Of a DNA stretch of 64,000 bases, positions 7,293 through 31,160 are shown piece after piece. The position numbers and the translations under genes were made by a program. The stretch is from contig NC_133617.1 of the NCBI RefSeq assembly GCF_048593235.1, positions 77,088,937-77,152,936 on the forward strand, read 5' to 3'. The DNA comes from Sminthopsis crassicaudata (Eukaryota). Under the pieces are notes generated by a model. It was not told where the DNA came from. It saw nothing but the letters and a program-made list of their open reading frames with translations, and did no database searches. Every line of letters starts with the position of its first letter. Within the stretch, counting starts at the first letter, position 1.

Positions 7293-7687
7293 ATGCGTCC
7301 GCTGGTGTTCCTGTGTGCCCAGCAGGTGATCAAAGATGAGGAATCTGCATGCCAGGCCTTGGAGCTTCTGCCACAGGACCTATACCCAGTCCTATTCAAG
7401 GCAGCCTTCATGCATGGGAAGACACTCTTGCTCCAGGCTTTGGTGCATACGTGGCCCTACCCCATCCTCAGTTTCAAGCAATTATTGCAGGATCGGCCAC
7501 ACTGCCGCAGGGCTCTGAGGCAGGACTGGCCACACTGTCTTCGGGCCCTTCTCCAGGAGTGTCCAAATTGCCCCCGTGCCCTGCTTCAAGACCGGCCTGC
7601 AGAGGAGCTGGTACAGGCAATGATCATGGGAGTCAAGGCTCGGCTGGAAGAAGCAACAGATAATGGAACCCAGCAGTCGCTCTATAG
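7293..7687 (+). CDS. LRRC14: LRRC14-like paralogue A (PRAME/LRRC14 family), coding exon 1 of 3; full CDS join(7293..7687,9014..9637,10304..10871), 528 aa
   Basis: ATG at 7293 gives MRPLVFLCAQQV..LPQDLYPVLFKAAFMHGK..VHTWPYPILSF, matching the LRRC14 N-terminus (BC-box/Cul2-box-like). Splice acceptor ttttcttcctggcag|g at 7243 lies upstream; donor AG|gtaaat at 7687/7688 (phase 2). The symbol denotes the family; which copy is the true orthologue is unresolved. Confidence 0.9.
7491..7589 (+). repeat. Coding tandem repeat, 3 x 33 bp (11 aa)
   Basis: DRPHCRRALRQ / DWPHCLRALLQ / ECPNCPRALLQ at 7491, 7524 and 7557. Confidence 0.9.
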
Positions 7688-9013
7688 GTAAATGCCTAAT
7701 TGCTGTTCACCTGAGGTAAGAAGTTGATAATAGCTGGAGAGGCAGTCAGGACCTCAGCTCACAAGAGAGAATCTTTTCAGAACCCATAGTATCTTAGAAA
7801 CAACAGCAGAAGGGGAGAGTCCTGACAACACCATTTATTGAGTGCCTGCTCTTTAGAGATCAGGGCCAGGACCTTGTTAAAGGACATAGTTAAGCACATT
7901 TCCTAAAGTAGCAAATGTTCCAAGTTAGGAAAAAGAGGCTGCTTAGATTTTTTGTTAGACTGTTATGATCTATGGGCCTCTAGCAAGGAGGTTGAAAATT
8001 CATTCCTTCAAGAGCTGCCTGGGATTTATTAGGAAGTGCCTACTAAGAGAATAATCATTGAGAAGTAGGTCCCCACAGCTATTTTTAGGCTAAATTATGA
8101 CCCTAGAGCCAGTCTAATGATATCTAAAGATATCACTAGCCCAGACTATAACTCAGGTGCTGTGGTAGCCAAAGGTTGTGACCCATTATTATGGCCTGTA
8201 TTGATGGAACAGCTTGATATTCTCCCTGTGAAATGAAAGAAAGGGGCAGCATTAACAGCAAAATGTCTACTCTGGTCAGACTTCCATTTTGTTTACATCC
8301 TAACTAAGGACATTGGCTCTGGAGTTTGTCAGAGTACAGGCAGGATGATGGGAGAGGGTTAGATTGCCATTCCTCATGAAACTTGCTGAGAATCCTAAAT
8401 ATTTAAGAGGGGCTGTTGAGGGAAAGATGAATGAGACTTGATCTAGGTTTGATCAGGAACAATGGAACAGTGGATATTAGTTGCAGAGAAACAGATTTTA
8501 GCTTGATTGCTAGGCTACTTGATTGATCATTACCTGTCCAAAACTAGACTGGCGGCTGCTCTTTCACTGGAACTTTTGTCCTTAATACAATAGTTGAATG
8601 TCTTAGTTTTTGTCAAACACTTGGCACTGTTACGGATTCACATGTTTCTGGTCTTGACGTATATCTTCTGTTCTATTTTCCAACCAAATTTTTTATTAAT
8701 AAGTTTGATTTGGTGATTCTAGGCCCCACTGATAATCTTTGAACAAAAGCTGGAAAAACACTTTTTGAATATATTATAGAGAAGATACTTTAGGCATAAA
8801 TTGGATTGACTTCTTAGGAGATCCCTCAGAATTGTGGCATTCTGTGATTGTATTTTACGCTTTTCACTCCCTTTTTCTCCTCTATTTTATCATAGTCTCA
8901 TTTAGTTCTTAAATTTGGTTATTTCCAGAATATGCTGGCTAAATTGGAATGCAATTAGCAGTATTTGGGGTATATTCTGGCACAGGATCTCACCTTCTCT
9001 GTCCATTTCTTAG

Positions 9014-9637
9014 GAGACATCCACTGCAGCTATTAGACATGACTGGACTTCTGGATTATGGCTATGAGGAAGACCTAAAAACTATGAAAATGTGGGCCCG
9101 TACCATGACCATGGCCCAAACAGGCATTTGCCACCTCTTGGACAAAGTCGAGCAGCCAAACGAAAGCCCCAACAAGTGCAGGAAGGTTGAGGACTTGCCA
9201 TGCACACTTCTCCCTGTGGAAGTGCGTGTAGATCTCTGGGTAACCCCTTCTTCCAGTGGCTTTCTGAAGCAGGCCCTGCAAAATAATGCTGTCAGCCCCC
9301 TGCGCTTGTGCTGCAGGGATTTCCGAGCTGAAGACCTCCCACCAGACATCACTGTGGATCTCCTGGGGCTGTTAGACCATTCCAGCTTACGCCGGTTAGA
9401 CCTGTCCTTCTTTACTTTAGAAGCAGGGGGTGTGTGGGAGATCGTAGCTTCCATTATGAAGTTTACTAATCTGCTGAGCTTGAAACTTCAGTACAGCAAC
9501 ATGGATGTGTGGCGACTCTGGGCCATGTTGGAAGGCACCTTTAGCTTCCTGGCTTCAGAGATGAGCAAGCTGAAACGCCTCAAGGAGCTTAATCTGGGCA
9601 CCTCTTGGCTTTCTGGCCAGCTGCGACAGCTGCTCAG
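9014..9637 (+). CDS. LRRC14: LRRC14-like paralogue A, coding exon 2
   Basis: Acceptor ccatttcttag|g at 9013 and donor AG|gtgagt at 9637. Length 624 bp keeps phase. Encodes RHPLQLLDMTGLLD..VEVRVDL..PLRLCCRDFRAEDLP..LKELNLGTSWLSGQLRQLL. Confidence 0.92.
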
Positions 9638-10303
9638 GTGAGTGAGTCTCTTATTCATTTACCTACCCTTGCTCCCAGTAACTGGTCAGGATCCTTAGTG
9701 AAAAGAAGCTTATGGTGAAAGGGAGCTCTGAATGAAGCTCACAAACAGGAACTGTTCAGCTTGAGAGAAATATACTCTCAAATATTTGTCTGAAGATCCC
9801 CTTCCTTTTCTTTGTTTAAATCTAAATTTCTTTTGCTTTTATGAACCTGTTAAGAGTAAAAGAACTATAGAAGACCTGTTCTCAAATCCTTGCCCTAGAA
9901 TTTCTGCTGTTCTGCTGTTCAACTTTGGATAATTGAGTTAACCTGGGGAAAGTGGAAAGGGGGTGATAGTTGATATTCTAGCTTCCTCTTAGAACCAATG
10001 TGAGGAAAACTCTAAACAATGAAGAGACTAGGAGAGTGAGTGTTTCTGTCATTATGCAGAGACAAAATGGCATGTTCCATGGTTCTGTTCCCTGTCTTAA
10101 AGTTTTGCAACTTCTCTCCTGTATGTGCTTTTCCTCACCATGGACCTTGGACAAAACTTGCCCCTTTCAGCCAGGAATAAAGTATCGCTTGGCCAGCTGG
10201 CACTGAAGAACAAGCTCCAGGAAGATGGAGCACTAGCCCAGTTTCCTTGTGTTTATCCCATTTTTCCTGGAAAATAATAGCATTTCTGTGTGTCTCTTTG
10301 CAG

Positions 10304-10871
10304 TGGCCTACAGTGTCCCTTGGAAAGCCTGGAACTTCCCGTCTGCTATCTGCTCCCTGTGGACTTGAGCTACTTGTCCCAGAGTCCCCATGCTCCCCAC
10401 CTCAAGAAACTAGACCTCAGTGGCAACAACCTGTCAGGTGACCTCTTGCCCCCCTTCCAGGCACTCTTGGGGGAGGCCTCGGCCTCCTTGCTGTGTCTGA
10501 AGGTGACAGAGTGCCAGCTTATGGACGTTCACCTCATCAGCACCCTGCCCCTTCTGTCCCGCTGCACCCGCCTGCGGTATCTTGGTCTCTATGACAATCC
10601 CCTTTCCAGCATTGGGCTAAAGGCCTTATTGTCGCGCTCCGAGGTCATGCCTGACCTCCAGCTGGTAGTGTACCCGTTTCCTGTGGACTGCTACAAGGAC
10701 CTGCCTGGGGTGCCCCTGTCTGCTAACCTCTTGGAGGACTATATCGATGAGGAGAAATTTGCTCAGGTTCAGGGAGAGATGCACCAGATGCTGATAGCAG
10801 CAGGTCGGGCTGATGTGCTGTGGACCACCGATGTCTATGGCCCAAATATGCCCGACTACTTTAGCTTGTGA
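10304..10871 (+). CDS. LRRC14: LRRC14-like paralogue A, coding exon 3 (LRRs, C-terminus DYFSL)
   Basis: Acceptor tctctttgcag|t at 10303. Encodes GLQCPLESLELP..HLKKLDLSGNNLSG..YPFPVDCY..WTTDVYG..DYFSL, with TGA at 10869-10871. Confidence 0.93.
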
Positions 10872-11806
10872 CAGGACGGCTTCCTGCCAGGGACAGGGAG
10901 GCCTTTGCAGTCACCCATTCCCCCTGGGCCTGGCAGGAGAGCCTCTTTACCTCCTGGGCAGCAGCTCTTGGGGACAGGTAGGGAGCCACAGAACCTTTGT
11001 TCTTATTGTTGCCTGCTCTCTTCAGACAGGGGAATGGGGCTAGCTAACAGGGAAGCTTCAACCTGTGCCTCAGCTGAAGGGTCCTTGCTAAGGAGGACTT
11101 GTGTGAATGAGGAGCTCTCATCCAGGGGAATAGGCCCACTCTTTTGGAACTACATTCAGTTGATTGTTCCTATGAAAAGGGCATAATTGTATCCATCCCC
11201 CCAGTGAGGGGAGGGAGTTGGCGTATATTATTGAGGAATGGAAGGTCATATACCAAGATGAGGCCCTGAAGCTCTTGAGTTATATCTCAGAAGCTTTCTT
11301 GGTCAAGAATAAGCTGTAGCCTTTCCCTTCCTGACCCACCCTTTGGAATGCACAGCTCCTGCTGTGAACTTCTCTTCTGCCAGGCTAAAGATTCCCACTT
11401 AGTTTCTCATGTCTTCTCTTAAGTTCCTGGTTTCTCTTCTCCAAGTGTTTCTCCAACTTTTTTTTTCTTCTTTTACTCTTCTACCTCATCCTGGGAAGGG
11501 TTTGAGCTTAGGCAGGTGCTAGCCCCTTCTTGAGCTGCATCAGCCTTAGCTACTCCTTCATCTCATCCTTCAGTGGCATGAAGAGGCAGGCAGTGGAAAA
11601 AGGCAGCCTCAGGGATCCTTCCCTGGATCTTCAGGCCTGGTTTTCCTCAGCTCCCCCAGGACTCATGTTCCTCTTTGAACTTGCCAAGGCTTTAATATTT
11701 CATTATTTTCAAATCTCATTTGATTTTTAATCTCTTGGCTTGAGATATCTAGCACCCCTTGGTCCCTGGGACTGCTTGCTCCTCCTGATCTCAGATTGGT
11801 CTATCT

Positions 11807-11810
<4 letters not shown>

Positions 11811-11855
<45 letters not shown>
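11811..11855. repeat. 45-nt poly(T) tract
   Basis: Direct reading; downstream of the paralogue A stop codon. Confidence 0.95.
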
Positions 11856-11858
<3 letters not shown>

Positions 11859-12954
11859 GCTATTGCCACTCTCTAAACTAGTACCTAATTTTGCTTTCAC
11901 TGGTCCCTTTTTTTTCTTCTTAATCCTGTTTCTCCGTACTTCAAATATTGCCTAGAATTCATTCCTGAATTAAAAATTGAGGGTATTGATTTGGAAATAA
12001 TATAACAACCAAGATAATTATAATCAGTTATAACAAAAATTAATTCCAGAACAAACTTTATTATATTTAACTTTCTGAAGTGTTTTCTAGGCTTAAGTTG
12101 GCCCTAGTGAACTTCTTTTCATCTACAAACCTTCCTCACATCCTCTAGGGCCCCAGAAGAGGACAACAAAACTTGTCTCAGAATCCCACTATCTATTTGG
12201 GATTTTCTTCCAACATCAGCTCCCATTTGTAATCAGGATGTTTCCTGATTGATGCTCAAAGATAACACACATTCTTATATAATCAGATTGCTAAATATCT
12301 GTCCTGTTTCTACCCAAATTATGGGAAAAGGTGATAAGGAACTATGTGTCACTGAAGTATTTTTCATTTTTTCATTATTCAGAAACAAGACTAATTCAGC
12401 ATTTTATTTAATACCACTTTGCCCCTGCCAAATTTCACAGAAGACAATCCCTTTTATTTTCAGGATTCCAGGAGTACATGGTGCTTATCTCACTGAGAGA
12501 GGTCACAGTGATAGCTAGTTGTTTCCTCACCCCAGAGGAAAAAGCTGCCTGGCAGAACTAGTGCCTGTCCCTTTCATTCCCTGTCCCTTGCTTCTTTATT
12601 CCTTATTCCCTAGACATTAGAGGAGGAGGAAAGGTTATATATGTGTCTGTGTGTAGACTTTGTTTCCTGACTCCTGAAAGAAACAGCTATGGCTAAGACA
12701 TGCATGGGGACCTGCTGACATTTTGCTTATCCAGGTTGACACAGCATAGACTGCATTGCTTCACAGATGATTCATAATCAACTACCTGGGAGAAACAGGT
12801 AGTGAACCTTCTTTTCTCTGGAGTCCTCACACTGACCTGAGCATATCAAGATTCCAGGGTAGAAGGAAAGTGAAAGAAACCCTTATACCATCTTAAAGAT
12901 GGGAAAATAAAGGAGCGAGAGAGGAAGGTCTCAAGCTATGAACAGGGTAATTGG

Positions 12955-13080
12955 ATTTTTCTCCACATGAATTGTTTGCTGACTTCCCCAGCCAGAGCTG
13001 ATGGAATTGTTCCTGAAGGAAGGACATGACATTCATTCCTGTTAAATTTAATCTCGTTTCTTGGTCCACTTTGTTGGAAT
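12955..13080 (-). mobile_element. L3/CR1 ORF2 fragment
   Basis: Minus translation NEIKFNRNECHVL resembles the CR1 RT C-terminal motif MKFNxxKCKVL. Confidence 0.5.
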
Positions 13081-14029
13081 CTTTGTTGTTTACAGGGAGC
13101 TGTGTGCCAACCAGTTTCTGCCAAGAATTTACGAGTTGAAATCACGGGTCCTCAGATTGCTCTCTGTGGACAGACTATTGGAACTGTTATCTTTGAGTTT
13201 TCTTCATTCCCCTTCAGTACCCACATTGTCCTGCAAAGGCGGGTCGGGGGGAGTTGCACACCAGCATATACGCCTGTGACAAATGTGTGCAGGCATGTCA
13301 AACTCTTGGGTGCTGAGGAGGATTCAAAAGATTGCTTTTACTGAAAAGGATGGAGCGGAGAACCAAATCCAGTCTTATCCTCTAGTGTTTCCTCCTGTGC
13401 TGGAGCAGACAGAGAAATATATAGGTCCTTGGCGTCTCTCTTAAAAACTGAACATTGATGTCCCAGAATTCAACCCCTGGGAGCATCCCAGATTAGAACT
13501 TGTGTAAACCTGATTCTGACCCCAGCATGTTCCCAGGTTCAAAGCTGATCTGTCTGGGGGCATCAATTGTTTTACCTACTCAAAGCCTTTTCACCATCTC
13601 TACCAAGAACCTTAGAGGAAATAGTCCAAAATGGCTGATTCTGAGTAGAATCTGAGTAGAGGTGGAGTCAGGGTAATTGAGGTAGTCCATAAGTGAACTG
13701 CTGCACTGTTATCCAGCCAATATTTAGGAAATTGCTTTGCTTTTCAACCTAAACGAAGGCCTTGATAAATTTTATTTTTTTGATCCATCATTCCAGCCTG
13801 TGAGTTCTTTGGGAATCTTACCTCTGTGATCCATTGCTACTTTGATACTCATTTTCCATTCAACAAACATTAAGTTTGTGGCAGGATTAAGGCACAATGA
13901 TTTGGGGTGGATTATTAAAAGATAAAGACATAGGTCCTGCCCTCAATAAGTTATAATTTAATAGAGGAAATAAGATGGACATAATTCTAAAAGGTTTTGG
14001 AGGGGGAAGAGGTGACTTTCTGCTATAGA

Positions 14030-15370
14030 GGAAATAAAAGACTTTTAATGGCACCTTAGTTGAATCTTGAGAGATTTTAACTGGAAATTTTTGTTTTAGG
14101 TGTGAGGGTGATGTGAACAAAGGCATAGAGAAGGGAAAGGATGAGATAAAAATAATGAATAGTCCCATCTTAGCTGACAGGTAGACTATATAAAGGAGAT
14201 AGGGTAGTATGAAATAAGGCTGAGAAAGTATAGAAACCAGATTGTGGAGGTTTTAAGGACAGGATCAGAATTTTATACTTCATTAAGTAGGAAAGCAGAA
14301 ATTGAAGTCATTTTTAAACACAAAAAGACTATAAAATCAAAGGATAGCTTAGGAAGGGGCAAGACCAGCGACATTGAAGATGAAATGTTTGAGTTGTTAC
14401 GGGAACACAGGCCTGGAATCATGGAGATAGATTAGATCTAGAGGCAAAAGTAGGGAAATGTTTGAGTAACATGATGAGTAGTAGGCCCTGAGAAAGAACA
14501 AAAAGTCTGCCTGGGGGGTACTCTTTGGATTATTGCTTTAGGTGTTGATATTTAGGTTGATAATCATCTGGGTGAGCCTCAGTGCAGTATCTTGGCTCTG
14601 TGAAAAAAGTTATCAATCATCTCTCATCTAGTCATTGAAAATGCGGTTCATGCTGTTGAAAAGCTATATGGACCCTGCAGAGAGAATAGTTCCAAAACAA
14701 GAAAATTGAGTGAGTTTTCATAACTTCACTGTTGCCTCTCAGCAGTTCACATAACTGCAGTGTTGCTTTTCACATAAGGGAGGTTGAAACATGATTGGAT
14801 CCAAGGGAATTGGGATCTAGGAATCTGATGACATCAGCCTTACTCATCTTTCTCACTGCTATTCAACTTCTTAGCCTCACATTCAAGACTCTTAGCTATT
14901 ATGCTTTCATACTTACTATGCAGTCTTGTTAGATACTACATAGGGTGTGCTCAGTGCTTCAGACAATCTGGACTGCTTCCCTTTCTGTCCTTCCCCTCCA
15001 CCTATGTCCAGCTTTTTCCTGCTTCTGTGATTTTGTTTATGTCATTTCCTATCCCTGTCCTCTCCCTTCCCCCAATCATCTGTTTAAAAGCTATCTGTAG
15101 CCCTTTAAGGTCCAACTCGAGTGATGTCTCCCTTCCCCCAGTCACAAAGCTTCTGCTCCCTTGCTCCCTAAACACCATTGCTTGCACCACCTGTCATGCA
15201 CTTATGAACCACAGAATGTTTAGTATTATAGTTACTTGTGTGTAATGCATCCCCTTGTTAGATTGTGAGCTCCATGAGGGCAGAGAGTTTATCTTACCTA
15301 ATCTTTTGTGTCTCCCCTCAACCCAGGCACAGTGTTCTGCTTTTAGAGGGCCCTTGTTAAATGTTTGTTA
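14030..15370. mobile_element. L2 fragments (about 14030-14480 -, 14870-15370 +)
   Basis: L2 tail gttagattgtgagctccatgagggcaga..aaatgtttgtt, plus purine-rich antisense L2. Confidence 0.55.
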
Positions 15371-17639
15371 GAAGCTTATTAAGTGAGGAGGTAGTGGAAG
15401 AACATCTACTTGTAAAAAGAGTTCGAATCTTTTGGGCCTGTTGGAATTAAAAAGCCTAGAGGGTGGTCAACTAGAGCTGCCCAACTAAGGAGAATACAGA
15501 GGAACTTGAAGAAGGTGGCTGCTTAAAAGCAACAAGAAAATACAGAGGCCAGCAGAACAACATCTGGACTTTGTTTAGTTCCAGAATTTGTTTATCTTAG
15601 AACCAAACTCCTCACCTTCTGCTCATCCCCTGCCTGTTATACTACTTCTTCAGCTGTGCCTTCCCTTCAGCTCCCCTGCCTGGATTCCCAGTTACTGAAT
15701 TTCTTTAGTGGAAGAGAAAAATCCCCTTTTCCCTGTCTTGGGAACTTCCCCCTGGCTTTGGGGTCTTTGGACTGGGAAGGTTCCAGTTTTCACCACGGAA
15801 CCTGTTTTATTGTGTGCCGGGATACTTGAAAGAACTTGGTTGGTTATGGGGGAATAGCTATCAGTGTAGCTGGGGGGAATCTTGGTGAGTGGGAGAGGTA
15901 CCCTGGATTTGGAGATGAGTGTGTACTCTCCCTGTATGTCTCCTCTCCTGGTGTCTTCTCAGGCCTTGGAGGAGGGGGGGGGGTGTCAAGGACTGCTTGG
16001 TACTGTGTCTAGATTGTGGGACCTCCAGAAGAACTGTGACTGTATCTTATCCATCCTATGTATCTCCCCTCAGCGCTGAACCCTGGTGCTCTGCGCTTAA
16101 TAAATGTTTGTTAAAGTTAAAAGTTAAAATTTGCTAAAGAGTCATGTTATCACCTCCTGGAGAAGCCAGAGTTCTATTAAAAAAAAAAAACTAAATGTGG
16201 GGAGGCCTGTGATCTGCATTTAGTCTCCCCTTTCTAGTCCTTGTTTCCTTCTGTGCACATTGAGAGGTTTGGAATAGTCACGGAGTTTATGGTTCTATTT
16301 TACAAGCTGTACAATATGTACTATAATACTATATAATAGGTACTTATTGATAAGCCCTACACTGCCTATGACAGACAGGGGCTGAACCACCAGGGCTTGG
16401 TTTTAAGGATTTCTTTTTCCTCACAGAGCTGGTGTTCCTTTGTCCTTTAGGTCTGGGCTGTGGTTGGGACCACTCACTTTTGTACCTACAAAGGCCTTTA
16501 GGCACATAGCCCATCTCATCTCATTTTACAATTAAGAAAGAAAATTGCAGCCCAGAAGTTGTGAACAACTAGAATTTGAACTTGGGTCCCCTAGAACAAG
16601 TCTAACTCTCCTTTCATTGTACCACACTGCTCCTTAAAAGGTAATAGAATGAGGGGTTCAGGGGTTTTCTTTGGTGTCAATCATAGCTAGGGGGAGAGGT
16701 ATGGGTGGGTGGAGGGTGACAAAGCTGGTTTTATTGGAGAGGGACAAATTTCCCATGAATGGAGTCACCCAACTCCACTGAAAGTAAGTTGGGCTGCATG
16801 TCATCTTGGGTCCCTATCACTGTAAGAGCCATGTGTGAGTCCTCAGTGAGAAGGGAGTGTCTGATCTGAGGAATCTCCCGTGTACCCTCAATATCCTTAC
16901 AAGCCTCTAGCTATGTCTGGGACAATTCCTAATCCCATCTCATGTAGGTAGGTCTATAGAGATGTCTCATCTCCAGCTGTGCAGGGAAGAGAGCAGCCAA
17001 TGTGTGCTCTCTGGAACAAGGAACTATCCCACAGACTTCAAAAGAGGAGCTAGACCACAGCATGAATAAGCAATATCTAGAGATATTATGTATCAAGATC
17101 CCTCAGACCAGCCTAAGATTCTGAATTATAAAATCTTGGTTGAAATTCTTAACGTGAATCATTTCTCTAAAATGGGTTCATGAACTTTTTTTAAAAATGT
17201 TTAAAATTTAATTATTTTCCTTTGTAATCCCTTGTATTTTTAATTCCTAAAAACATTCCAACACTCTTGGAACAGGTCCAGAGATTTCTCCAGAGGTGGG
17301 CTAAGAACCCCTGCACAGAAATAAGGTGGGTGGACTATATAATCCCTCAGGTTTCTTTAACATAGGAGGCAGTCTGGCTGTGACATGTTAGGCTGATCCT
17401 AGGACTAGAACCAAGGTCCTGTAGTTCATTCAGTGAGACAAGTATGAATGATATTCTCAGACATTCCTATTTCTCTGTTGGGATGGGGCTGCAGTAATAA
17501 ACTGTCCAGAGTAATATTACAGAATCTCTTATTAATTAATTAATATTACAGAATGAGTTGGTGGTAACTCATAGAATCTCTATAACACCCTAAATCAGCA
17601 TCCAGCCTTCATGTTCATAATAAGTCCCATTCCACTTTT

Positions 17640-18250
17640 GAATCACTTAGTAGTCCAGTCCAAAGAGGCTAAATTTGTGCATGTGCATCTTTTGTTTCTC
17701 ATGCTACCTTTTGGGATAAACCAGAGTAAGTTAAATACGTCTTACTACACGGCCCTCCAAATACCTGAAGAGAGAGCTATTGTGTTCTGAGTCTTCAGTT
17801 TAAATATTCCTTGGTCAATCCATGGCATGGATTGTGATGTCATTCACTATTTGCTATTCCCTTCAGGTTTAGCACTTGTCTTTCTAGAATATGGCATTTA
17901 AAACCCCACATGATACAGGAGATGCAATCTTGGAGCAGAATGCAGCATTAGCCCTCCTTGTTATAGGCAGCATATCTTAAGTCAAAGCTAAGACAGCTTT
18001 TTTTTTTTTTTTTAGTGCCCTAGTGCCCTGATAATTCAGTGAATTCACAGGCCACCGAAACCAAGATATTTTCAGATAAACTGCTCTCCACCTCATTCCA
18101 AGTACTTTCAAAATTCAATATTAAACTTATAGGACTCTGCATTTAATCTTAGAATGAATTTGTCTATAAACTTTATTTGGGATCTTGTCTCTCACCCGTT
18201 AAGTGTAATCCAGCTTTATGTCATTTTTAGACAATTAGCATATGTATGGT
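17640..18250 (-). mobile_element. L3/CR1 fragment
   Basis: Antisense CR1 3'-region motifs. Confidence 0.45.
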
Positions 18251-18799
18251 AGGCTGATGTAGGACACAAACCAGTGGGACTGGAGCAATGAACATAATGG
18301 GTTGTAAGTGCATGATCAAAGATAGCTCCCAGTGGAGATCTGCCAAGCTGACAGAACCATTAGTGATTACTATTATGACAGGCCAGTCCACATACCCACC
18401 ATCCAGAGGCTCAGGCCACCTTGCTTACTGAGACACAGATTGGATCTTGGATCCACTGCATTGCCCGTCTCTGCCAGCCCCAGGGCTACTATAGCAGATA
18501 CCAAGACTGGAAGACCAGGCCCTCTGCTCAGCTTTCAGCTATGGATCTTTACCTTGGATTTTTCCTTATTCAGTCAGTTCTAATCCCCTTTGGCTCTTCC
18601 AGGGCTTGTATTACAGAATTTGACTATCAGAGCAATGCTGCCTGGCCCAACCTTTGCTGGCTACTTTGCTGTCCCAATCCGCTTCAGTTCTACAATTCTA
18701 TATCCCCAGATTGCCCAGTCTAAGAAACTCCTTGATCCCCATCACTACTTCCATTCTCTTTGCCACCCTGAGATTCTCTTGATAAAAATTATTCACACG

Positions 18800-21270
18800 A
18801 TCTAGATACATACTGATAGCTGTTAACTATAGATTCCCAGGACATTCTCCTTCCTCCATGAGTTCTGTGCCTGGCTCGAGGCCATCCTGATTCCTGCTGT
18901 TCAAACTACTCAACTCCCATGATCTATACTATTATGTTCTACATAGATGGTTGTGCCCTTGATCATCTTATAAATTCATTTTCATGATCCAGAACTCTGA
19001 AATTCCTCTATTTAATCATCTCCTGTCTTTCCCTCATTTTCCATTTATCAAGTCTTTTTTCACTATGATCTACAATCTTTCCATTCTTTGGTATTTTGCC
19101 AAGCTATCACTTCCATTGGGGAACCATTCCAACTTATACACTGCCCTTTACTTTCAAATTCCCAGCTCCTTTGTTTTATCACTGTTTATCCCTTGCTAAA
19201 TTATCCCAGAGCTGGATTACTTCCAACACACCTGCCCCCCCCCCTCTCTTAATGTTCCTGGATGGACCTAAAGGAAGTCATATCCATGCTGACTGAGTCT
19301 GCTGTAAATATAATCTAATCTCAGTTGGACTCTTGCTGGAACAAAGATTTTTGGCTTCTTAATTATCTCCATAACAATTTCATCCAATCTTTTAGTCTTA
19401 AGCTTCCTACATCAGCCTCTCCCCTGTCCTCCCAGATGAGGTTCTTGCCTCTCAATTTACTTAAAGAAAACAGCTGGCTGAGATCTTCTCTGCCTCCTTA
19501 CCCACTTGACCCCATTATTCCTTTTTTTTTTTTTTTTTGAAGTGATCTCAAAGCCAACCCTTCTATCCATGCCCTTAACCTCATCCCCTCCTGTCTTCTC
19601 CATGAGATTACTCAGATTATCATCCTCCTATAGAGTCTTAAATATCTCCCTAGGTTCTGGTTCCTTACAGATCCCTAAAAACATGCCCAAGTCTACTCTA
19701 GTCTTAAAAAAAAATCTTTAAAAGCCATATGTATTAGAGATTTGTAGCAGCATATACAATCTTTTTCTGTTGTTCATATGTAGAAATGATTACATTGGTA
19801 TATTAAGTTCATACAGCAGAATACATAAAATATATTTTTTTCTCCCCCTGAGACAGTTGGGGCTAATTGACTTGCCCAGGGTCCCACAGCTAGGAAGTTT
19901 TAAGTGTCTGAGACTGGATTTGAATTCAGGTCCTCCTGACTTCAGGACTCTATCCACTGCACCACCTAGTTGCCCCTGAAAAAAAAATATTTTTAAGAAA
20001 ACATTTGTCCTACACTACCAGATGTCTCCACTTTTCTTTTGCTCTTCATAATCCTTTGAAATATGGCATCTAATCTGGAACTGCTGTCTTCAAAGTTGCC
20101 AGTAATCCTTTAGTTGCTCAACTAATGTCCTCTTCTCAACCTTGCTGCAGCATTTGACTTTACTGACCATCTCTTCCTCAGTCCCCTTTCTCTCTGGGTT
20201 TTCATGACATTAGCTCTCCTAGTTCTTCCAACAGGTTTTTCTCAACATCTTTTGCTGGGTTATTATTCATATCACGTCCTACTGTCCTGGGCCCTCTTAT
20301 CTTGGTGACTTCCATCAGCTCTCTTCATTATCTCTGTACAGATGACTCATACAATAATAACCACTCCTACTTTTCCTTCCAAGCTCCAATCTAGCAGTAT
20401 CCACTGCTTTCTGGACATGTCCAAAACACAACTCATATATTTTCTCCCAACCCCCCCTTCCTTTGAACTTCCTGTTTCTATTGAGAGGACTGCCATCCTT
20501 CTAGTCATCCAGCTTTTTAAGCCCTATTATCCTTACTTGATTCTTACTCACCCCTCATATCTATTAAGTTACCAAACTGAAATAGCCTCCTGATCAATCT
20601 GTCTTGTATTTCTCCATTCTGTTGTTCTTCATCTTCCACAAAACTGCAAAGTGATTTTCCTGAAGCACAGATCTAACCATGTCACCCCCTTATTGTACCT
20701 CATTCCTTTCTATAAACTTTGTGGTCCAGCCATACTAGCTGCTATTCACACATGACACAACCTCTTTACCCTTGTATTGCTTGTCCCCCATTCCTGGAAT
20801 GCTATTCTTTTCCCCTCCCTTTTAAACCTGGCATACACAATCTGTGCAAATAGTTGGTGGATACAGAATACAGAAGATAGTAAGACATACACAGAAAACA
20901 CTAGGGCAACTCATGGCCCTGCAGGCCCCCACATTATGCTCCCAGGGCCATTTTTAGACAATTGATGATAAAATACTTTTTAATTCCATTATCTGCTTGG
21001 GAGAACTTCCTTCTTCCTAAAGGAATAAGAATATAAACTCTTATACCACATTTAAAATCTTAATATTGTGTCTCATCCTTTCTGTAATATCATTTGGACC
21101 AGGGGGAAATCAATTAAACAGGATTTCTTAACTCTCATAACATCTATGCAAACAAGTTTGTCCTCATAATGTAAATTGAGGGCAAGGAGTTTCAAATTTA
21201 TCTTTGTATTCTTAGTGCCTAGCACAGTACCTGATGTGCAGCAAATGCTTAATAAATGCTTCTTGATTTA
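18800..21270 (+). mobile_element. Long degraded L2 LINE interrupted by SINE and L1 pieces
   Basis: L2 ORF2 motifs (ccttcctccatgagttc..gcctggct; gcagcatttgactt..tgaccat; ttcattatctct..gatgactc) and tail gtgcctagcacag..cttaataaatgctt. Confidence 0.7.
19849..19978 (-). mobile_element. WSINE1-type CORE-SINE (tRNA-derived)
   Basis: Reverse complement reads ggggcaactaggtggtgcagtggatagag..ctgaagtcaggaggacctgaattcaaatcc..gggcaagtca. Confidence 0.8.
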
Positions 21271-21889
21271 AGAATAGCTATTGTTCACCCTATGATTTTC
21301 AATGGAATAGCCTCATTTTGTGGGTTCATCTATAAATTTATCTTGGACAGACACTGAAGATGGACATAAGTTAGACACAGAATTCAAGAGGAGGGGTTAC
21401 CCTTAATTGTTCCACCCCTCAACCTTTTGAGTCATTAGGGACTGCCTGGCTTCCATGAAGTATCCAGAACATCCATAGCCATGGTTGATGTTATTGCAGC
21501 TGTAGACGGGCTGTCAGAGGCCAGCCTTGTGGAGGTGAGCAACATCCTGAAGCAGGGATGAGGACTGGAAAGTGAGGAGAAAAGGGGATTCTAAGCCTTA
21601 AAACTTATCAGTGCAGATTACCTTTTTTAGTCCTTGATCTGGACTTGCATCCCAGAACCACCCCTTACTCCTCTTTCCCCCATCCTCATCACACACATAC
21701 CCAAAAGTACATTTTTTCTAATCTCTCTGTCTGCTGGCCCTGGTGCTTCCAAATTCTCTGACCACACCCAAACAACTGAGGGTATGAAGAAGGAAGTTTG
21801 GGGAGAAATAGCTGGAATGAGTAGGTCTTGTGTAGGAGAGCCTAACCTTTTCATTTTCACTATATTCAATAAACTATGTGATTACAGTA

Positions 21890-22725
21890 TGTGAAGGGTC
21901 AGAGCTTGTCAAATGTGGGGTCGTGACCATAAGGAAGTCATCTCGATTTTCTCGATTCCATGTCTGTGTTTTTGAGCAATATTCCCTATCAGTTAAATTT
22001 AGATTCAATCCAGCCATTGCCATGGTGGCAGTTGATGAGCCTGTATTTTCATGATGAGTACCCTCTGGTGGTCAGAGAGGATACTGTAAGCTTTTTGGAG
22101 ATTATAACCAAGCATGAGGCAGAGAATAACTCAGGTAGTTCCTGAGGCCCAATTTAAATATACAGCTATATGCTATTATTGAAGCAAGTTGTGGTCCCTT
22201 TAAGAAACTATTTCCTTTTGATCTGTGATCTTTTTCAGATTCTTCCTGGGCATATCCTCCCTAGACAAGTTATCTTTCCAGGATGCCAGAACCTTTGATT
22301 CAATTAGAAATCCTGGTCAAAAAGCACTCCTTTGAAGTGTTAATTCCAATAGGAGATGTGGGCTGAAAACTGATGAGTCTAAGCCAGGGAACCCAGGCCC
22401 CCACCTGGTCTAACCTTTGTCATTGTGATCTGCTCAGGCTGTCCTAGCCCCCCCACCAAGATACCCAATATAACAGCTTCCTTCAAGTAAGGCCTTTGCA
22501 GATGGACCCAGGTAGCTCACTCAGCTGCCAGGACTTTCTGTCCACTGAGAAAGCATTCTCAGTGCAAAACTCCGTTTTCCAACAGATCGGCCACTATAGA
22601 AGTCAGTCTTTTGGTAAACTGATTTCTATCCAACAATAAACTTTCATTTTGCAACTAATAATTCCGGAATGAGTGGATTCTTTCACTCCTAAAACCTGTG
22701 GCCGATTTAAAAGATATTCTTAACA
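21890..22725 (+). mobile_element. Solo LTR-like element (ERV)
   Basis: TG...CA ends (tgtgaagg...ttaaca), TATA-like aatataa near 22467, AATAAA at 22635-22640 followed by a U5-like tail. The 5' boundary is uncertain and no TSD was found. Confidence 0.5.
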
Positions 22726-23045
22726 ACTCTCATTGTCACTAATCTCTTGACCACCAGGAATTGAGACCACTCAAATGGCATTATCTTGTAGGTTTAACAG
22801 AGTCAGCTCACAAGACAATTTGGACTGGTGCCACTATATGATATTGATTGCCCTTTTAAAATCTATTCTATACCTTAAGCAGCAGCTTTCTAGAATTTTT
22901 CTAGTCATCCCACCAAGTGCAAGTGATAGTGTTTTAACTTAATTTGCTCAAATTTACTTCCTTGTATTGAGATATTTAGCCTAGCCTCTATAACTCAGAT
23001 TTTCTGTATTTGAATCTATAAATAACTAATGGAATGAAAGAAAAG

Positions 23046-23883
23046 TGATAAGGTGAAAATAAGGAAAAGAAATGGAGGTTCCCTTTCTATAAATTTGGCT
23101 GAGAAAGGGAGGAGTGATTTAGATAGTAGCTTTGACGAGGGGAGCTCCAAAACTCACTCTCTGACTTTGGGAAGGAGCCATGAAGTAAAGCACTTGAAGC
23201 TCCTAGAAGGAGAGATTCTCCTTCCACCCTGCCTCAGAGAGAGACCGCCCCAGGGAATCTGATAAAGTGGTTTGTCCAGGTGGGGCTGGTTGAGTCCTGA
23301 GATAAAAAATTCAACTGAAGATCTTCAATTCAGCTCCATCAAGAGCAGCCCCCAGCTTGTAGCCAAGGCTTCTAAAAAGAGCCAATCTTAAACCCTCTCT
23401 TTGCAGAGGAGCGAAAATGCCAATGAAATGCTCGCTCTTCCTGGTATAGCAAACTGTCCGCTGGAATATTCTCTACCAGAGCTACCCGCTCTTTATCCTC
23501 ACCCCAACGAGGAACTTCTCTGCCAGGATTCCTCCACTGAGGAATTCAGCCTTTCTATTCCTGCATAGCAAAGGCTGATTTTCTAATGCCAATAACAAAC
23601 CCCTTATCAATCTAGGTTTCCTTTATGAAGAATCTCTGCTTGCCAGAGGGGGGTTCCCCCAAACTCCCTACCCATGTGCAGAACCCCAAGGGGGTCCAGT
23701 TGGTTCCCTGAACCCTGAACCTGCCACTAGACCTTATCATTTAACTCCCTGACCACCAGGAACCCTCACCTCATTTTGGCTCCCAGAATCTAATCTCGTC
23801 ATTTGGTTCCCCGACAATCCTAAATCTAGACCTCATATTTTGGTTCTCTGACCAAAGGGAACCCCAAAACCTAAACCTCATCA
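23046..23883 (+). mobile_element. LTR-like element with terminal inverted repeats and a reiterated U5/PBS(tRNA-Glu)-like array
   Basis: Starts TGATAAGG; the complementary CCTTATCA ends at 23609 and 23739 and CCTCATCA at 23883. TGGTTCCCTGA-like motifs at 23701, 23804 and 23841. Confidence 0.6.
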
Positions 23884-24089
23884 GCTCGAGGGAATGGTAG
23901 AGAAAAATAGAATTTTTAAAAGGATGAGCATATGCTTCTCTAGGGAAGGATCCAGCGATTGGGGAGAGAAGGGAGATCAAAAAGTGAGGAAAAGCTGGAG
24001 TCGCCTAAAGCTAAATGCGATACTTGGGCTGTCTTTGCTGGACAAGGGCTGGATCCAGGCAGAGAGGAAGGGTGTCTCTACTAGGCACT

Positions 24090-24960
24090 AAATGTCCATC
24101 ACACGTGCCCAAGACGAGGGACAGGGAGCCCTGGACAGGGGCGGAGCAGCCCAGGAAGCCAGGGCAGGCGTATCGCAGCCCGGAAACGCGGCAGGGAAAC
24201 AAGGAATCTTGAGGGACAGCTCCTTGGCCAACCACGAAGGGCGGCGCAACAAAGGGGCACCTGATAGCCAATCCTCTGTGAGCTCTCAGCTCCGACTTGT
24301 CTCCATCCAATGGAGTGTCAAAACGCCATCATCCAGTGCGATCGTCGCCCGCCTAGATTCCCGCGTCATGTTTTTGGCCGTTGGCTGTTGATTACTTCCA
24401 CTAAGAGGATGAGAGCGGGGTCGAGGGGCAGGGCTTGAGGGGCAGCCCCATAAGGGGCTGGGGCTGGCTTCCCTTGTCAGCTGCCCGGCCGCCTTTCCCC
24501 AGCTTTGGCTTCCGGACCTAAGCCTGCGCATAGCCCCTTTTCATTCACGCCTGCGCTGATAGGAAGGGGGAGGGGTTGGGCGCGGTGTGGGAGGCGCGCC
24601 TGCGTAGATAGAATCCCTTCCGCAGAGCCGCGCCTGCGCAGAGGTGCCAGGCTGGTTCCGCAGAAATGAAGTCGCTTTTGGCCTTGTGTGCTGTGCAGGT
24701 GACCCGGTACCAGACGTTGGCTTGCCGGGCTCTGGCTTCCCTGCCTCGGGAACTGTACCCGGTCTTATTCCGGGCCGCTTTCATAAACGGCCAAACGCTG
24801 GTGCTGCAAGCGCTAGTGCAGACGTGGCCCTTTCCGTGCCTGAGCTTCCGGCAGCTGCTCCCCCAGCCCAAGCAGATGGGCTGGCCCGAGAAGCCCCACA
24901 AGGAGAGTGTACAAGCCGTGATCTTGGCGCTGCTCGCGGCGCCGCGCAGGTAAGCCAAGC
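24090..24960 (+). promoter_or_regulatory. CpG-island promoter of LRRC14 paralogue B
   Basis: CCAAT at 24268 and 24307, E2F-like TTCCCGCG at 24358-24365, several NRF1-like GCCTGCGC motifs (e.g. 24522, 24630-24640), GC box near 24139. Confidence 0.75.
24666..24949 (+). CDS. LRRC14: LRRC14-like paralogue B, coding exon 1 of 3; full CDS join(24666..24949,26864..27481,28032..28599), 489 aa
   Basis: ATG at 24666 inside a CpG island gives MKSLLALCAVQV..LPRELYPVLFRAAF..VQTWPFPCLSF..ESVQAVILAL. Donor AG|gtaagc at 24949/24950 (phase 2). Confidence 0.9.
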
Positions 24961-25149
24961 TGGGACTACTCCCTGGCATGGGGAAGGGAACTATTCTTCC
25001 ACTGCAAGGCGCTGTGCGAAGAGCCCTGTAAATTTCTCTGTAGTAGAGAGGGATGTCACATACTCACACCAGAAAGCCTGCTTTTAGGGTCCGGAAAAAC
25101 CAGGGCAGTGGCCTCTGTCCACGGAGCAGATACACACCCACGTGTAATT

Positions 25150-25245
25150 TATTTTTTGGTGAGGCAATTGGGGTTGTGTCTTGCCTAGGGTCACACTTTT
25201 GAACTCGGGTTCTTCCGAATCATTATGCTACGTAGCTGCTCCCTC
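25150..25245 (-). mobile_element. Degenerate WSINE1-like SINE
   Basis: tttttggtgaggcaattggggtt..cttgcctagggtcacac..gaactcggg..gtagctgctccc. Confidence 0.55.
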
Positions 25246-25934
25246 ACGGAATATATTTGATAAATGATCCTTGAAAGAACCTACTAGAGGGGCAAAACAG
25301 GAATTGCGTGGAACTGATGTCATGTGCTAGCCCCTGGAGCCTTCCGGTTCAGACTCTGAAGGGTCAGGGGTGGTTTTGCCTGTGGCTGCAGAAGGGGGTG
25401 GTCACTTTGGCCTTTGGTTTGGAAGCTTCATGCCTCTAATAAGCTCTCTTACGTGGGGTAACTGAGGTATCTGCGCAAATTATCTAAAAGGCTTGTCATT
25501 CCTGAGGTATGTCTCATACTTCTATCTGTGCTTTTCAGGAGGGAATCTAGCAGCATGTAGGGGTCTGACCAACATTCCTTTTTCATGGGGATGAAAGGAG
25601 GAAAGAAAGGGAAAGGGAGCCTGACTTGGGACTGCCAAATTAGGGACTGAACCAGGGCAGAACCCTAGGTCTTCCTTAAGGGTATCATTGCCTAGCTTCT
25701 TAAAATTTGGTTGGTGACCTCATATGGAGGTCTCATAACTGAATGTGGGAGTTGTGAAATTAAGATTTATCAGGAAATGCTTTATATATGTTTTATATAT
25801 CTTTCTTCCTCAGGTCACATAAAAACTATTGGGGTTGTGAGTGGATTTAAGTTTTAAGAAGTCCCGATCTGTTTACTTGTGGAGGTCTTCTAATTGGAGA
25901 GGAAATTAGGGAGATCTTTTTTTCCACCTATATA

Positions 25935-26165
25935 ATAGTTGGCATTTATATGGAGCTTTGAGGTTTGAAAAGCACTTTACATGTTAACTCCTTGAATCCT
26001 CCCAATTACTCTGTAAAGTAGATGCTTATCCCCATTTTTACAGATAAGAAAACTCTGGCAGATAGAAGTTGATTCAAACAGGGTCACCCAGCTAAGTGTC
26101 AGGAAGCTTTTCAAAATTCAGGTCTTCCTAATTCCAAGTTCTGTGTTTTATTCTTTGTATCACCT
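25935..26165 (-). mobile_element. MIR SINE
   Basis: aagcactttacat..ccccattttacagataagaaaact..gggtcacccagctaagtgtc. Confidence 0.7.
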
Positions 26166-26863
26166 ATCTCTAAATCCTTTGGTGTTGTGGCCTTAAAAAA
26201 TCTATGAATCAACTCACTTCACCAAAGACATATCAGTCCAACCATAACTTACATAATAACGTGAAGGATTAATTTTTAGATGACAGCCTGGAAGCAAGGT
26301 CCAGTTAGGTTGAAAGAATCCATGGAAGCTTGGGTCGTGGTAATGGTTGTGGAGGAAGGGATCAAGATTTTGTGGAGATAGACATGGTTAGGACCTGGCA
26401 ACTAATTAAACCTGAGGAATTGTGGAACTGGACATCACTGACAAGTTTATTGGTATTTATGCTGCCTTGAGGATGACTGAGGTGTAGCCACATCCCTTAT
26501 TTGGTTAGTTTGTCTTTATTTCTAAAGGTTTTTACATACCTTCTTCTCCCTTTTTAGGGATCTGGCTATCAAATGGAGGATGGAAAAAGCTTTAAGGAAA
26601 GGAAGGGGTTAGATCTAGAATCCTGAATGCAATGAAAAAGGCAGGCAAGATGTGACTGACCCAGGGATCTACACATCTAGACAGTAGTGGGAAAGTTTTA
26701 AGTACTGAGAACAGGACCTTGAGCTAGAGAGATATTTGAGGAAAAAGGCTAGTTAGGCCTGGAACCCCAAAGCCCTGATCTTCCCCCAGGACATCTGCCA
26801 GCCCCAATTTTCTGTCCAGAGTGAGCTGTCCAGGTCATGGTCACAGCCTTTTTCTCCTTGCAG

Positions 26864-27481
26864 GAAGCCTCATCTTCGAGTGTTGGACATGACTGGTTTC
26901 CTGGATGCCAGCTGTGGGCAGGACCCTACGACCATGAGCATGTGGGCTCGCTCAGTGGCGGTGGCAAGGACTTGTCTCAGTGCCCAGACTCAAGCTAGGG
27001 CAGCTCAACGCTTAGCCAAACGCCGCAAACTGGAGCCTCAAGTCCCTGTTGCTAGTCCTGTGGAAGTGCACACTGACCTGCTAGTGAACCGAACTTCTTA
27101 CAGTGTCCTGAAGGAGGCTCTCCTGACCAGCACTTGTGGTCCCCTTCGCCTTCGCTGCAGGGACCTTTGGGCTGAGGAACTGTCAGGTCCTAGCACTGTA
27201 GCTCTCTTGGAGCTGCTGGATCCAGTGTGCCTGCGCCAGATAGACCTACGCTTCAACAACTTGGGACTTTCAGGCCTGTGTATGGTCGTGCCCCACATGG
27301 CCAAGTTCACCCACTTGTTGAGCCTGAAGCTACAATACAGTAATGTGGATGTGCGGCGGCTCACCACTGAAGCTGAGGGCAGCTTCCAACACTTTGTTTC
27401 CGCGATTGGACAGCTGAAATGCCTCAAGGAACTCAACATGGGCTCCTCTCGACTCTCAGGCCGCCTTCATCAGCTCCTTAG
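26864..27481 (+). CDS. LRRC14: LRRC14-like paralogue B, coding exon 2
   Basis: Acceptor tttctccttgcag|g at 26863 and donor AG|gtgagt at 27481; 618 bp. Encodes KPHLRVLDMTGFLD..TMSMW..DLRFNNLGLSGL..LKELNMGSSRLSGRLHQLL. Confidence 0.93.
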
Positions 27482-28031
27482 GTGAGTGGGCCTAGGTTTC
27501 CCCAAACAATAGATTTTTTTTTATCATCTATGGGAGAGGCACATAAGAGGCCCAATGAGTAGAGCTGCAATTTGACATTTACTGTATTGTTTACTCTGCA
27601 TTTTCGGTAAGTACTTGGGGCACTTGTTAGGGTAAAAACAACCCCAAGTAGAAGTTTTAGTGTTTGGGGAAGAGGAAAATGATTAACACTGTAGGAAAAG
27701 GGAAATAAAATCCCCAGGGTATACAGCTTGGGAGGGAGAATTGGGTAAGGACAAAGTGGCCTAGGCTTGGGAAGGGGGGGGAGGTGTCAGCACAACAGGA
27801 GGGGTTAAAATCCTTATGAGGAATGCTAGAATGGCATATACATGCCTTTTCCCCCTAAAGCTGTATTTTTCTAGGACCAGTGAGCTGACAAAGTAGAGGG
27901 TCTTAGAAACTCTAATGGCTGGAGTCAGAGTGTAAAAGAATTTTAGCTTGGTGCAGCCACGAGGGCCTGTATATCTATCTTGGTTTGTTGAACTATTAAA
28001 ATGACCAGTGCCTATATATATTTCTCTGCAG

Positions 28032-28599
28032 CGGCCTACAGGGCCCTCTGGAAAGCCTGGAACTTCCCTTTTGTGCCCTTCTTTCTGGGGACTTGAGTTA
28101 CTTGGCCCAGAGCCCCCATGCCACCCATCTCAAGAAGCTGGATCTCAGTGGCAACAAACTGTCTGGTGACCTCCTGGGCCCCTTTCAGAAACTTCTAAGG
28201 GAAGCCTCAGCTTCCCTGATATGTCTGGATGTTACAGAGTGCCAGCTCATGGATGTCCATCTTGTTACTATCTTGCCCACCCTATGCTCCTGTACCCACC
28301 TCCGCTACATTGGTCTCTATGGTAACCCTATTGCTAGTGCTGGACTGAAAACCTTGATCCAACACTTACAGGCCTTGCCTGAGCTTCAGCTGGTGGTACA
28401 CCCAGTCCCTGTGGATTGCTATAAGGACCTGCCCTGGCCACCATCTTCAGCCAGTCTCCTAGAGGGTACTGTGGATGAAGAGAAACTTGCCAATGTGCAG
28501 GCTGAGCTGCAGCAGTTGATAGAGTCCATACAGCGCCGTGATGTGATGTGGACCATGGACATCTATGGCCACAACAGTTTTGACTACTTCAGCCTGTAG
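28032..28599 (+). CDS. LRRC14: LRRC14-like paralogue B, coding exon 3
   Basis: Acceptor tttctctgcag|c at 28031. Encodes GLQGPLESLELPFC..HLKKLDLSGN..PVDCYKDLPWPP..DIYG..DYFSL, with TAG at 28597-28599. Confidence 0.93.
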
Positions 28600-28614
28600 A
28601 AGAATGTTTGTATC

Positions 28615-30433: not shown

Positions 30434-31160
30434 CGCTCCAGCCGAAGCTTCCCGCGGCTCGGCGGGGTCCTGAGATGGGGCATGGTGGGAGTGAGGGAGC
30501 GCCGGGAGCCTAGCCCAACGGCCCGCGGCCGGCTGAGGCCCAGCCCCAAGATCCGCCCCTGAGCCCCGCCCCCTGGTCTCTTCCCCTTGACCCCGCCCCG
30601 ACCCCGCCCCTCCCCCTCCCGAGGCCTGGGCCCGTCGCTCCACCTCCAGCACAGCCTACCTCTGAGGGAGTGGATCCCACCCCTCAGCCTAAGGCCCGCC
30701 TCACCATGGGAACACCGCGGCCGGCCCCTCCCTCCGGCCGGCCGGCCCTCCATCCCAGCTACCCCTTACCTGGTAGTTCCGGGCACGGGCGATGCCTTTT
30801 TTCTGTCGCGGCGCCAGCCTAGCGCGTCTCAGAAACCGCCAGAAGAGGGAGGAAGGAGCCAGGTTGGCTCTCTTCAGGAGTCACCAGTCGGCGCGCGCAC
30901 TCTGTCGGCTCTCACTTCGGAGCAGACGAGTTCGCAGCCTAGAGTGCCACCTTCCCGCCCTCTTCTGACGGAAGTGACGTAAAGCCGGAGACTAGGGAGT
31001 CTCTAAGACTGAGAAGGGTAGTGTGAAAATCTCCCTGGCGGGGTTGGGGGGGGGGGGGAAAGAACTCGGCCAAGAGGTGATGCGATTCCCACCCATTTGG
31101 GCGTCCTCGGCGCGCCCTTCGTTAACTCCGGCTCATAGCCGAGGCCACTAGGGGGCGCTG
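30100..31160 (-). promoter_or_regulatory. CpG-island promoter of the F-box gene with ETS-CRE composite motif
   Basis: CpG-dense. CGGAAGTGACGT at 30969-30980 and an E2F-like TTCCCGCC near 30952. Confidence 0.7.
30770..30950 (-). other. Non-coding 5' exon of the F-box gene (300-bp intron 30470..30769)
   Basis: On the minus strand: donor CCAG|gtaagg at 30770/30769 and acceptor catctcag|GACC at 30470/30469. No ATG seen in the exon. The upstream boundary (TSS) is approximate. Confidence 0.65.

Follow-up and report, generated by a model that had tools for sequence, protein, structure and literature searches.

Two LRRC14-derived paralogues of Sminthopsis crassicaudata, one of them probably frozen after an early burst of change

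We analyzed a 64,000-nt stretch of the genome of the marsupial Sminthopsis crassicaudata (contig NC_133617.1; hereafter the window), which contains 0 N over its full length and harbors two complete genes of the LRRC14 family of leucine-rich repeat (LRR) proteins, here designated copy A and copy B. Our results indicate that these genes are likely to be LRRC14-derived paralogues predating the last common ancestor of living marsupials, with B as the conservative copy and A as a gene that went through a burst of change and was then frozen, in line with neofunctionalisation and strong purifying selection. Under this interpretation B would have stayed closest to the ancestral tetrapod sequence while evolving at an ordinary rate, and A, after the duplication, would have tripled an 11-aa Cys/His motif, remodelled one LRR and replaced 28 conserved sites before becoming nearly invariant across marsupial orders, the pattern expected when neofunctionalisation is followed by very strong purifying selection.

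Gene models of the two copies

A preliminary description of this sequence had reported two complete three-exon LRRC14-family genes with intron phases (2,2), a 568-bp last exon and a DYFSL end, and all of these features were confirmed (Table 1). Each of the four introns in the two genes is in phase 2 and has GT..AG ends, the last exon measures 568 nt in each copy, both proteins terminate in DYFSL and both open reading frames (ORFs) are intact. The window models were compared exon by exon, without joining the spliced coding sequences (CDSs), and full-length work used identical database proteins: the exon translations of copy A match protein P0298 at 526 of 526 residues, and those of copy B match P0190 (Sminthopsis crassicaudata, 489 aa) at 487 of 487. 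For type A, RefSeq also lists long "isoform X1" proteins (553-687 aa), which correspond to an in-frame reading of the 5' untranslated region (UTR) at 7244-7292 from upstream exons, and these upstream exons have no match in the window. The conserved start of A is the ATG at 7293, and further 5' UTR exons are located upstream of the window.

Four LRRC14-derived lineages in marsupials

A profile of exon 3 recovers LRRC14 proteins at E values of 1e-100 to 1e-60 among 1.84 billion representatives, and each exon of A and of B can be aligned to named LRRC14 proteins, which establishes full-length homology. In addition, the precomputed annotation of the database proteins identical to A and B lists the family domains PF27089 and PF27091. 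Profile, word-indexed and cluster searches reveal that marsupials possess four LRRC14-derived lineages, all of them labelled "LRRC14-like" in RefSeq: A (528 aa) and B (489 aa), which are encoded in the window, and C and D, which are encoded outside it. Types A, B and C are each found in both American and Australian marsupials.

Proteins of type C are 495 aa long and occur in 12 marsupial species at 93-99% identity (P0002 and P0151-P0161). A tblastn search found no type C gene in the window; the gene shares a chromosome or contig with A and B, and in four species the accession numbers of C and A run consecutively. Type C is probably the upstream neighbor of A, giving an array order of C-A-B, for which the consecutive RefSeq accession numbers from Petaurus, tammar, Macrotis and Monodelphis and the shared contigs are the sole basis. 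Type D is represented by at least four copies in Sminthopsis, six in Antechinus, four in the devil, two in Dromiciops and one in Monodelphis (P0036, P0357-P0372, P0328), and its Sminthopsis-Monodelphis pair shows 40% identity, the orthology of that pair not being established. Dasyurids (devil, Antechinus) and Trichosurus additionally have type B-like copies on other chromosomes (P0189, P0318, P0199); these dispersed copies are lineage-specific duplicates of type B.

Early change and subsequent near-invariance of copy A

Compared to the translations of the window, type A proteins are identical at 526 of 526 residues in koala and devil, at 525 in wombat and Macrotis, at 524 in the tammar and at 523 in Petaurus and Monodelphis, and the type shows 0-6 differences per 528 residues across marsupial orders. 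All 188 residues of exon 3 are the same in koala, devil, tammar and wombat. Pairwise protein identity among seven species amounts to 98.9-100% for A, about 87-98% for B and 93.1-98.2% for C (86.9% for B and 94.1% for C between Sminthopsis and Monodelphis), and LRRC14 itself shows 88-95% identity among placental orders. Type A forms a single cluster at 90% identity, the next best match being C at 59%. Since A, B and C share a chromosome in most species, or one 753-kb contig in Petaurus, a regional difference in mutation rate seems a rather unlikely cause of the conservation of A.

The wombat has two more A-like predictions (P0001, P0311): one lacks 8 aa and differs by a few substitutions, and the other is on a 20-kb contig. 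These may represent partial duplication, haplotigs or faulty gene prediction. Protein P0001, which is 92% identical to A exon 3, was considered as a sign of variability in A and rejected as a slightly damaged second A-like prediction.

The near-invariance of type A follows a long stem branch. The A stem measures 0.29-0.30 substitutions per site, plus 0.09-0.12 held in common with D, and the depth of the A crown is ~0.005. A set of 198 sites is conserved across placental, monotreme, sauropsid and amphibian LRRC14; at these, A has fixed 28 changes (7, 16 and 5 in exons 1, 2 and 3), compared to 11 in B (3, 4 and 4) and 13 in C (1, 10 and 2). Seven of the 28 changes in A fall in a single LRR, at residues 263-277, and include the loss of the repeat asparagines (NN to FT). 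This bears out the suggestion, made in the preliminary description, of an altered LRR region in A, given that 16 of the 28 changes lie in exon 2. Furthermore, A alone carries a 22-aa insertion in exon 1, made up of two extra copies of an 11-aa Cys/His unit that is present once in other family members. The underlying 33-nt units have 21-23 of 33 bases in common; random in-frame 33-mers share 8.6 bases on average, with a 99.9th percentile of 18. This triplication was seen by direct comparison and was missed by Tandem Repeats Finder and by a general repeat search. A scan of metagenomes for host-derived contigs encoding A exon 2 found nothing.

On these comparisons, copy A is a gene that changed heavily early on and was then frozen, and its burst of change may have been adaptive.

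Phylogeny and dating

The phylogeny was inferred in two IQ-TREE analyses under LG+C20 with posterior mean site frequencies (PMSF), using LRRC14B as the outgroup; supports are given as value pairs for each tree. The mammalian LRRC14 clade, which includes PRAME, is recovered at 100/100 in both trees. Within it, types A, C and D group together (100/99 and 95/99), with A and D as closest relatives (99/93 and 90/88). Copies A and B had been described as a tandem duplicate pair; in the gene tree this pair is not a closed one, A being nearest to C and D and not to B (95/99).

The position of B lends itself to a second interpretation, in which the B split predates the divergence of marsupials and placentals. 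Type B would then be a therian lineage that was lost in placentals or became PRAME, and A, C and D would be co-orthologues of placental LRRC14. In agreement with this, B falls outside a group formed by placental LRRC14 and C+(A,D) (92/96 and 77/91; exon 2 tree, 93), and PRAME joined B in the first tree (84/72). However, a single marsupial clade survives the approximately unbiased (AU) test (delta lnL 13.1, p 0.14), and the long stems of the placental and A/C/D groups could attract each other. PRAME, moreover, shifts between trees: the exon 2 tree groups it with placental LRRC14 and the A/C/D types, the tree with dense sampling of D groups it with placental LRRC14 at 65/64, and its union with placental LRRC14 is not rejected either (p 0.37). 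We judge an early B split to be less likely than not, although it is the alternative to be taken most seriously. The identification of B as the PRAME orthologue, which the first tree had suggested, was dropped, because it does not hold from one data set to the next and the AU tests give no significant result. A grouping of D with PRAME obtained 56% support in a quick tree; on these trees, D and PRAME look like independent expansions.

Relationship between copies A and B

The duplication that separates A from B is old, as had been proposed, because synonymous sites are saturated and because both types occur in American and Australian marsupials. The proportion of differing synonymous sites (pS) between A and B is 0.74, 0.77 and 0.61 in exons 1, 2 and 3, the corresponding amino-acid identities (BLASTP) are 43%, 47% and 68%, and at the DNA level only exon pieces, and not introns, can be aligned.

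The preliminary description also envisaged a mosaic of complementary divergence, with A closer to human LRRC14 in exons 1 and 3 and B closer in exon 2. The motifs cited in its favor are correct against database LRRC14 proteins: A keeps QEC..C.RALLQ, YPFPVDCY and GRA.VLWTTD, and B keeps TMSMW and DLRFNNLGL, the latter being DLSFFTLEA in A. The complementarity itself is not upheld. Identity to placental LRRC14 in exons 1, 2 and 3 is 45-48%, 43% and 62-64% for A and 49-51%, 51-55% and 59-60% for B, which means that B is no farther than A in exon 1 and trails it by only about 3 points in exon 3, and B is evenly conservative at conserved sites (3, 4 and 4 changes). In per-exon trees, the stems of A and B measure ~0.89 and 0.29 for exon 2 and 0.25 and 0.19 for exon 3, respectively, indicating that the apparent mosaic is mostly rate variation. 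The true asymmetry between the two sequences is thus the strong divergence of A exon 2.

These figures bear on subfunctionalisation, by which A and B would have divided the ancestral LRRC14 roles through complementary loss, in exon 2 of A and in exons 1 and 3 of B. The retention of C..C.RALL in A and its loss in B, the retention of DLRFNNLGL in B and its loss in A, and the slightly greater proximity of A to placental LRRC14 in exon 3 are what this scenario predicts, but the even distribution of conserved-site changes in B next to the 7/16/5 of A, and an exon 1 in B that is no farther from placental LRRC14 than that of A, are not. Moreover, there are four lineages rather than two, A groups with C and D instead of B, and the near-invariance of A exceeds the constraint on the parent gene as seen among placentals, so that a new and tight role fits better. 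Subfunctionalisation hence appears improbable.

Gene conversion between A and B was considered as a source of the similarity in the 5' half of exon 3, where the first 75 codons show 80-83% amino-acid identity, compared to 47-60% in later codons, and where the pS of exon 3 as a whole is below that of exons 1 and 2. In this 5' part, however, pS is still 0.47-0.61 (a synonymous distance, dS, of 0.7-1.25) with a proportion of differing nonsynonymous sites (pN) of 0.07-0.13, and the residues shared by A and B are also conserved in placental, monotreme and reptile LRRC14. The high pS, the low pN and the conservation of these residues elsewhere indicate purifying constraint and not recent conversion. 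Furthermore, A exon 3 is identical in the four species named above and B exon 3 varies, which argues against ongoing exchange. The check for conversion called for in the preliminary description thus gave a negative result for recent events in this segment, and we regard conversion as a very improbable explanation of the similarity.

Protein architecture and proposed mechanism

Matches to the BC-box and Cul2-box consensus sequences, searched as regular expressions derived from PMC4878042, occur at the same positions in A, B and C and in echidna, turtle and placental LRRC14. Pfam matches to LRR_6, LRR_4 and LRR_1 are present in exon 3 of A and of B. The AlphaFold model of the A protein (mean confidence, pLDDT, 79.7; predicted TM score, pTM, 0.78) is composed of a confident N-terminal helical module and an LRR horseshoe of the ribonuclease inhibitor (RI) type, with alternating strands and helices from residue 200, and its best Foldseek matches are the LRRs of NLRP proteins and of ribonuclease inhibitor. 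The A-specific repeat region is modelled with low confidence (pLDDT 38-48). A sequence search of the PDB returned generic LRR proteins only, and no solved structure of LRRC14 or PRAME.

In PRAME and PRAMEL7, an N-terminal VHL box is needed for CUL2 binding, and the proteins bind Elongin C and CUL2 (PMC4878042, PMC10933316). By analogy, and judging from their sequences, A and B are probably substrate receptors of Cullin-2 RING ligases (CRL2). Like PRAME, both proteins would serve these ligases by docking Elongin B/C and CUL2 through the N-terminal BC box and Cul2 box and by binding substrate with the RI-type LRR horseshoe; copy A may recognize a new partner that is itself invariant.

Transcription and promoter regions

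To the region of copy A (5500-11400) we assigned RNA-like contigs from four runs, after a filter that can remove conserved gene sequence. In run X9, from a closely related organism, a 472-nt contig with a depth of 78 covers 7243-7684 and continues at 9011, skipping 1326 nt with GT..AG ends and reproducing the predicted junction of A exons 1 and 2 (7684/7687 joined to 9011/9014). Flanking and intronic contigs have depths of 6-10. The contig starts at the end of an acceptor-like site (7243), in agreement with the RefSeq isoforms that have exons upstream of the window. Contigs for A exons 2 and 3 are absent from all four runs, an absence without weight as the filter may have removed them. Runs X10 and X9 each also provide one long contig (2.1-2.4 kb, depth 10-12) upstream of the first coding exon of A, ending at 7272 (5500-7272); these contigs may represent intron retention, pre-mRNA or background DNA.

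The promoter region of copy B is the only CpG-island-like stretch within the profiled intervals (1-12000 and 22001-30000). The idea that copy A has no CpG promoter was dropped, since its 5' UTR exons are located outside the window, on the upstream side.

Neighborhood and other features of the window

Copy B is followed downstream by two genes on the opposite strand, a single-exon F-box gene and a gene with LRR, LRRCT and Ig domains (Table 1), the latter being a putative LRRC24 named from its domain architecture. Within the locus, this neighborhood puts B on the LRRC24 side; in a tandem array it marks out no single copy. A run of 45 T was observed at 11811-11855, between copies A and B, and a (GT)n(AT)n microsatellite lies at 28610-28670, directly after the stop codon of B. 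Rfam gave no match within the window.

Table 1. Coordinates of annotated features, in positions of the window.
Feature	Position	Strand	Description	Basis
Copy A CDS	7293-7687, 9014-9637, 10304-10871	+	395 + 624 + 568 nt, 528 codons, stop TGA	ORF listing and splice-site reading
Copy A first coding exon	7244..7687	+	5' UTR part 7244-7292, ATG 7293, donor GT 7688	acceptor-like site ends at 7243
Copy A residues 3-34	7299..7394	+	BC-box match at residues 3-12, Cul2-box match at residues 26-34	regular expression with consensus; model pLDDT 80-92
Copy A triple 33-nt (11-aa) units	7488..7586	+	QDRPHCRRALR, QDWPHCLRALL, QECPNCPRALL	direct comparison, alignment
Copy A exon 2	9014..9637	+	linker and first LRRs, most diverged part of A	
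Copy A remodelled LRR, residues 263-277	9405..9449	+	R263S, N265F, N266T, G268E, L269A, L272V, P277A	
Copy A exon 3	10304..10871	+	C-terminal LRRs and tail, TGA	Pfam LRR_4, LRR_6, LRR_1
CpG-rich promoter region of copy B	24001..25000	.	GC 0.60-0.63, CpG observed/expected 0.58-0.73	
Copy B CDS	24666-24949, 26864-27481, 28032-28599	+	284 + 618 + 568 nt, 489 codons, stop TAG	ORF listing and splice-site reading
Copy B exon 1 CDS	24666..24949	+	BC box at residues 3-12, Cul2 box at residues 26-34; C..C.RALL motif gone	
Copy B exon 2	26864..27481	+		205/205 residues identical to Sminthopsis crassicaudata protein P0190
Copy B exon 3	28032..28599	+	TAG	homology and Pfam LRR matches
Single-exon F-box gene	29297..30652	-	intact, tail to tail with copy B	F-box-like Pfam match 7.9e-11
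Exons of LRR + LRRCT + Ig gene	31841..35482	-		Pfam LRR_8, LRRCT and Ig_3 matches on ORFs

Discussion

Several points weigh against the interpretation of A as a neofunctionalised and strongly constrained gene, and against the CRL2 role proposed for both copies. The long stem of A would also be expected from a period of relaxed constraint, and strong purifying selection on A is deduced from its protein identity relative to that of B and C. The evidence for transcription of A consists of one contig, from one run, in a closely related organism. Regarding the mechanism, the pair of BC-box and Cul2-box motifs is of modest specificity, both motifs occurring in 6.8% of sequences shuffled from the first 60 residues. 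Finally, PMC12589100, citing Wu et al. 2016, gives the published function of LRRC14 as binding of IKK-beta and attenuation of TLR/NF-kB signalling, and not ubiquitin ligation.

With these points taken into account, we still favor LRRC14-derived paralogues of which A was frozen after early change. It is unusual for a lineage-specific duplicate to have the same protein sequence in koala, devil and the window species, and this points to a tightly constrained, marsupial-specific function. PRAME has been treated as placental-only (PMC3037382), and marsupials diversified LRRC14 into lineages of very different rates, with A nearly invariant, B and C ordinary, and D multi-copy and fast. The sister pair of A and D may be seen as a natural experiment, in which one LRR adaptor scaffold gave rise to both a fixed receptor and an arms-race-like family. 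A more far-reaching proposal, which we hold to be possible if somewhat doubtful, is that marsupials independently re-invented a PRAME-like system from LRRC14, in which a single duplicated lineage would have divided into a frozen, essential, marsupial-only CRL2 receptor (A, after an adaptive burst that took in the triplicated Cys/His motif) and a fast, multi-copy family (D) parallel to placental PRAME, in convergence between two therian branches.

The genes themselves are already known as RefSeq models and as members of the LRRC14/PRAME family, and the label "LRRC14-like" hides four distinct genes. In the literature searched, we found no paper linking LRRC14 with marsupials and none on a marsupial substitute for PRAME; the four-lineage structure, the extreme conservation of A and the PRAME-like behavior of D appear to be unreported.

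Comparison with known systems

Human LRRC14 is located at 8q24.3. Placental LRRC14 shares ~55% full-length identity with B and ~51% with A, has the N-terminal BC/Cul2-box motifs, RI-type LRRs and DYFSL tail in common with both, and resembles B in length (493-495 aa versus 489 aa) and in its location beside an LRRC24-like gene. It differs in being a single gene, as opposed to four derived lineages in marsupials, and A departs from it further by its 22-aa motif triplication, its remodelled LRR and a conservation of 98.9-100%, compared to 88-95% among placental orders. The RefSeq "LRRC14-like" models of marsupials (528 aa in koala and devil, 489 aa in Sminthopsis crassicaudata) are the same genes as A and B, known from annotation only. 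LRRC14B belongs to the same family as a separate, vertebrate-wide paralogue, joined to the LRRC14 clade by a branch of 0.86-1.37, and neither gene of the window falls within it.

The members of the PRAME family are CRL2 substrate receptors, multi-copy, fast-evolving and expressed in the germline or as cancer-testis genes. The family is placental and has been reported absent from opossum, platypus and chicken (PMC3037382). Like A and B, PRAME is LRRC14-derived, being nested in the mammalian LRRC14 clade, and its LRRs are preceded by an N-terminal VHL box; in contrast to PRAME, A and B exist as single copies that evolve slowly or at an ordinary rate. Neither rapid evolution nor copy-number expansion was found in these two types, A being one cluster at 98.9-100% and B showing 87-98% identity with single extra dispersed copies, and B groups with PRAME in one tree only (84/72). 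That copy A itself is the marsupial counterpart of PRAME, a germline, fast-evolving and expanding CRL2 adaptor, is hardly credible, since its origin from LRRC14, its altered LRR, its BC and Cul2 boxes and its multi-copy, fast-evolving sister clade D are outweighed by a near-invariance opposite to PRAME dynamics and by its failure to group with PRAME alone in any tree. The marsupial parallel to the PRAME expansion raised in the preliminary description does exist, in type D and not in copy A: type D is multi-copy and fast-evolving as PRAME is, but it is sister to A and not to PRAME.

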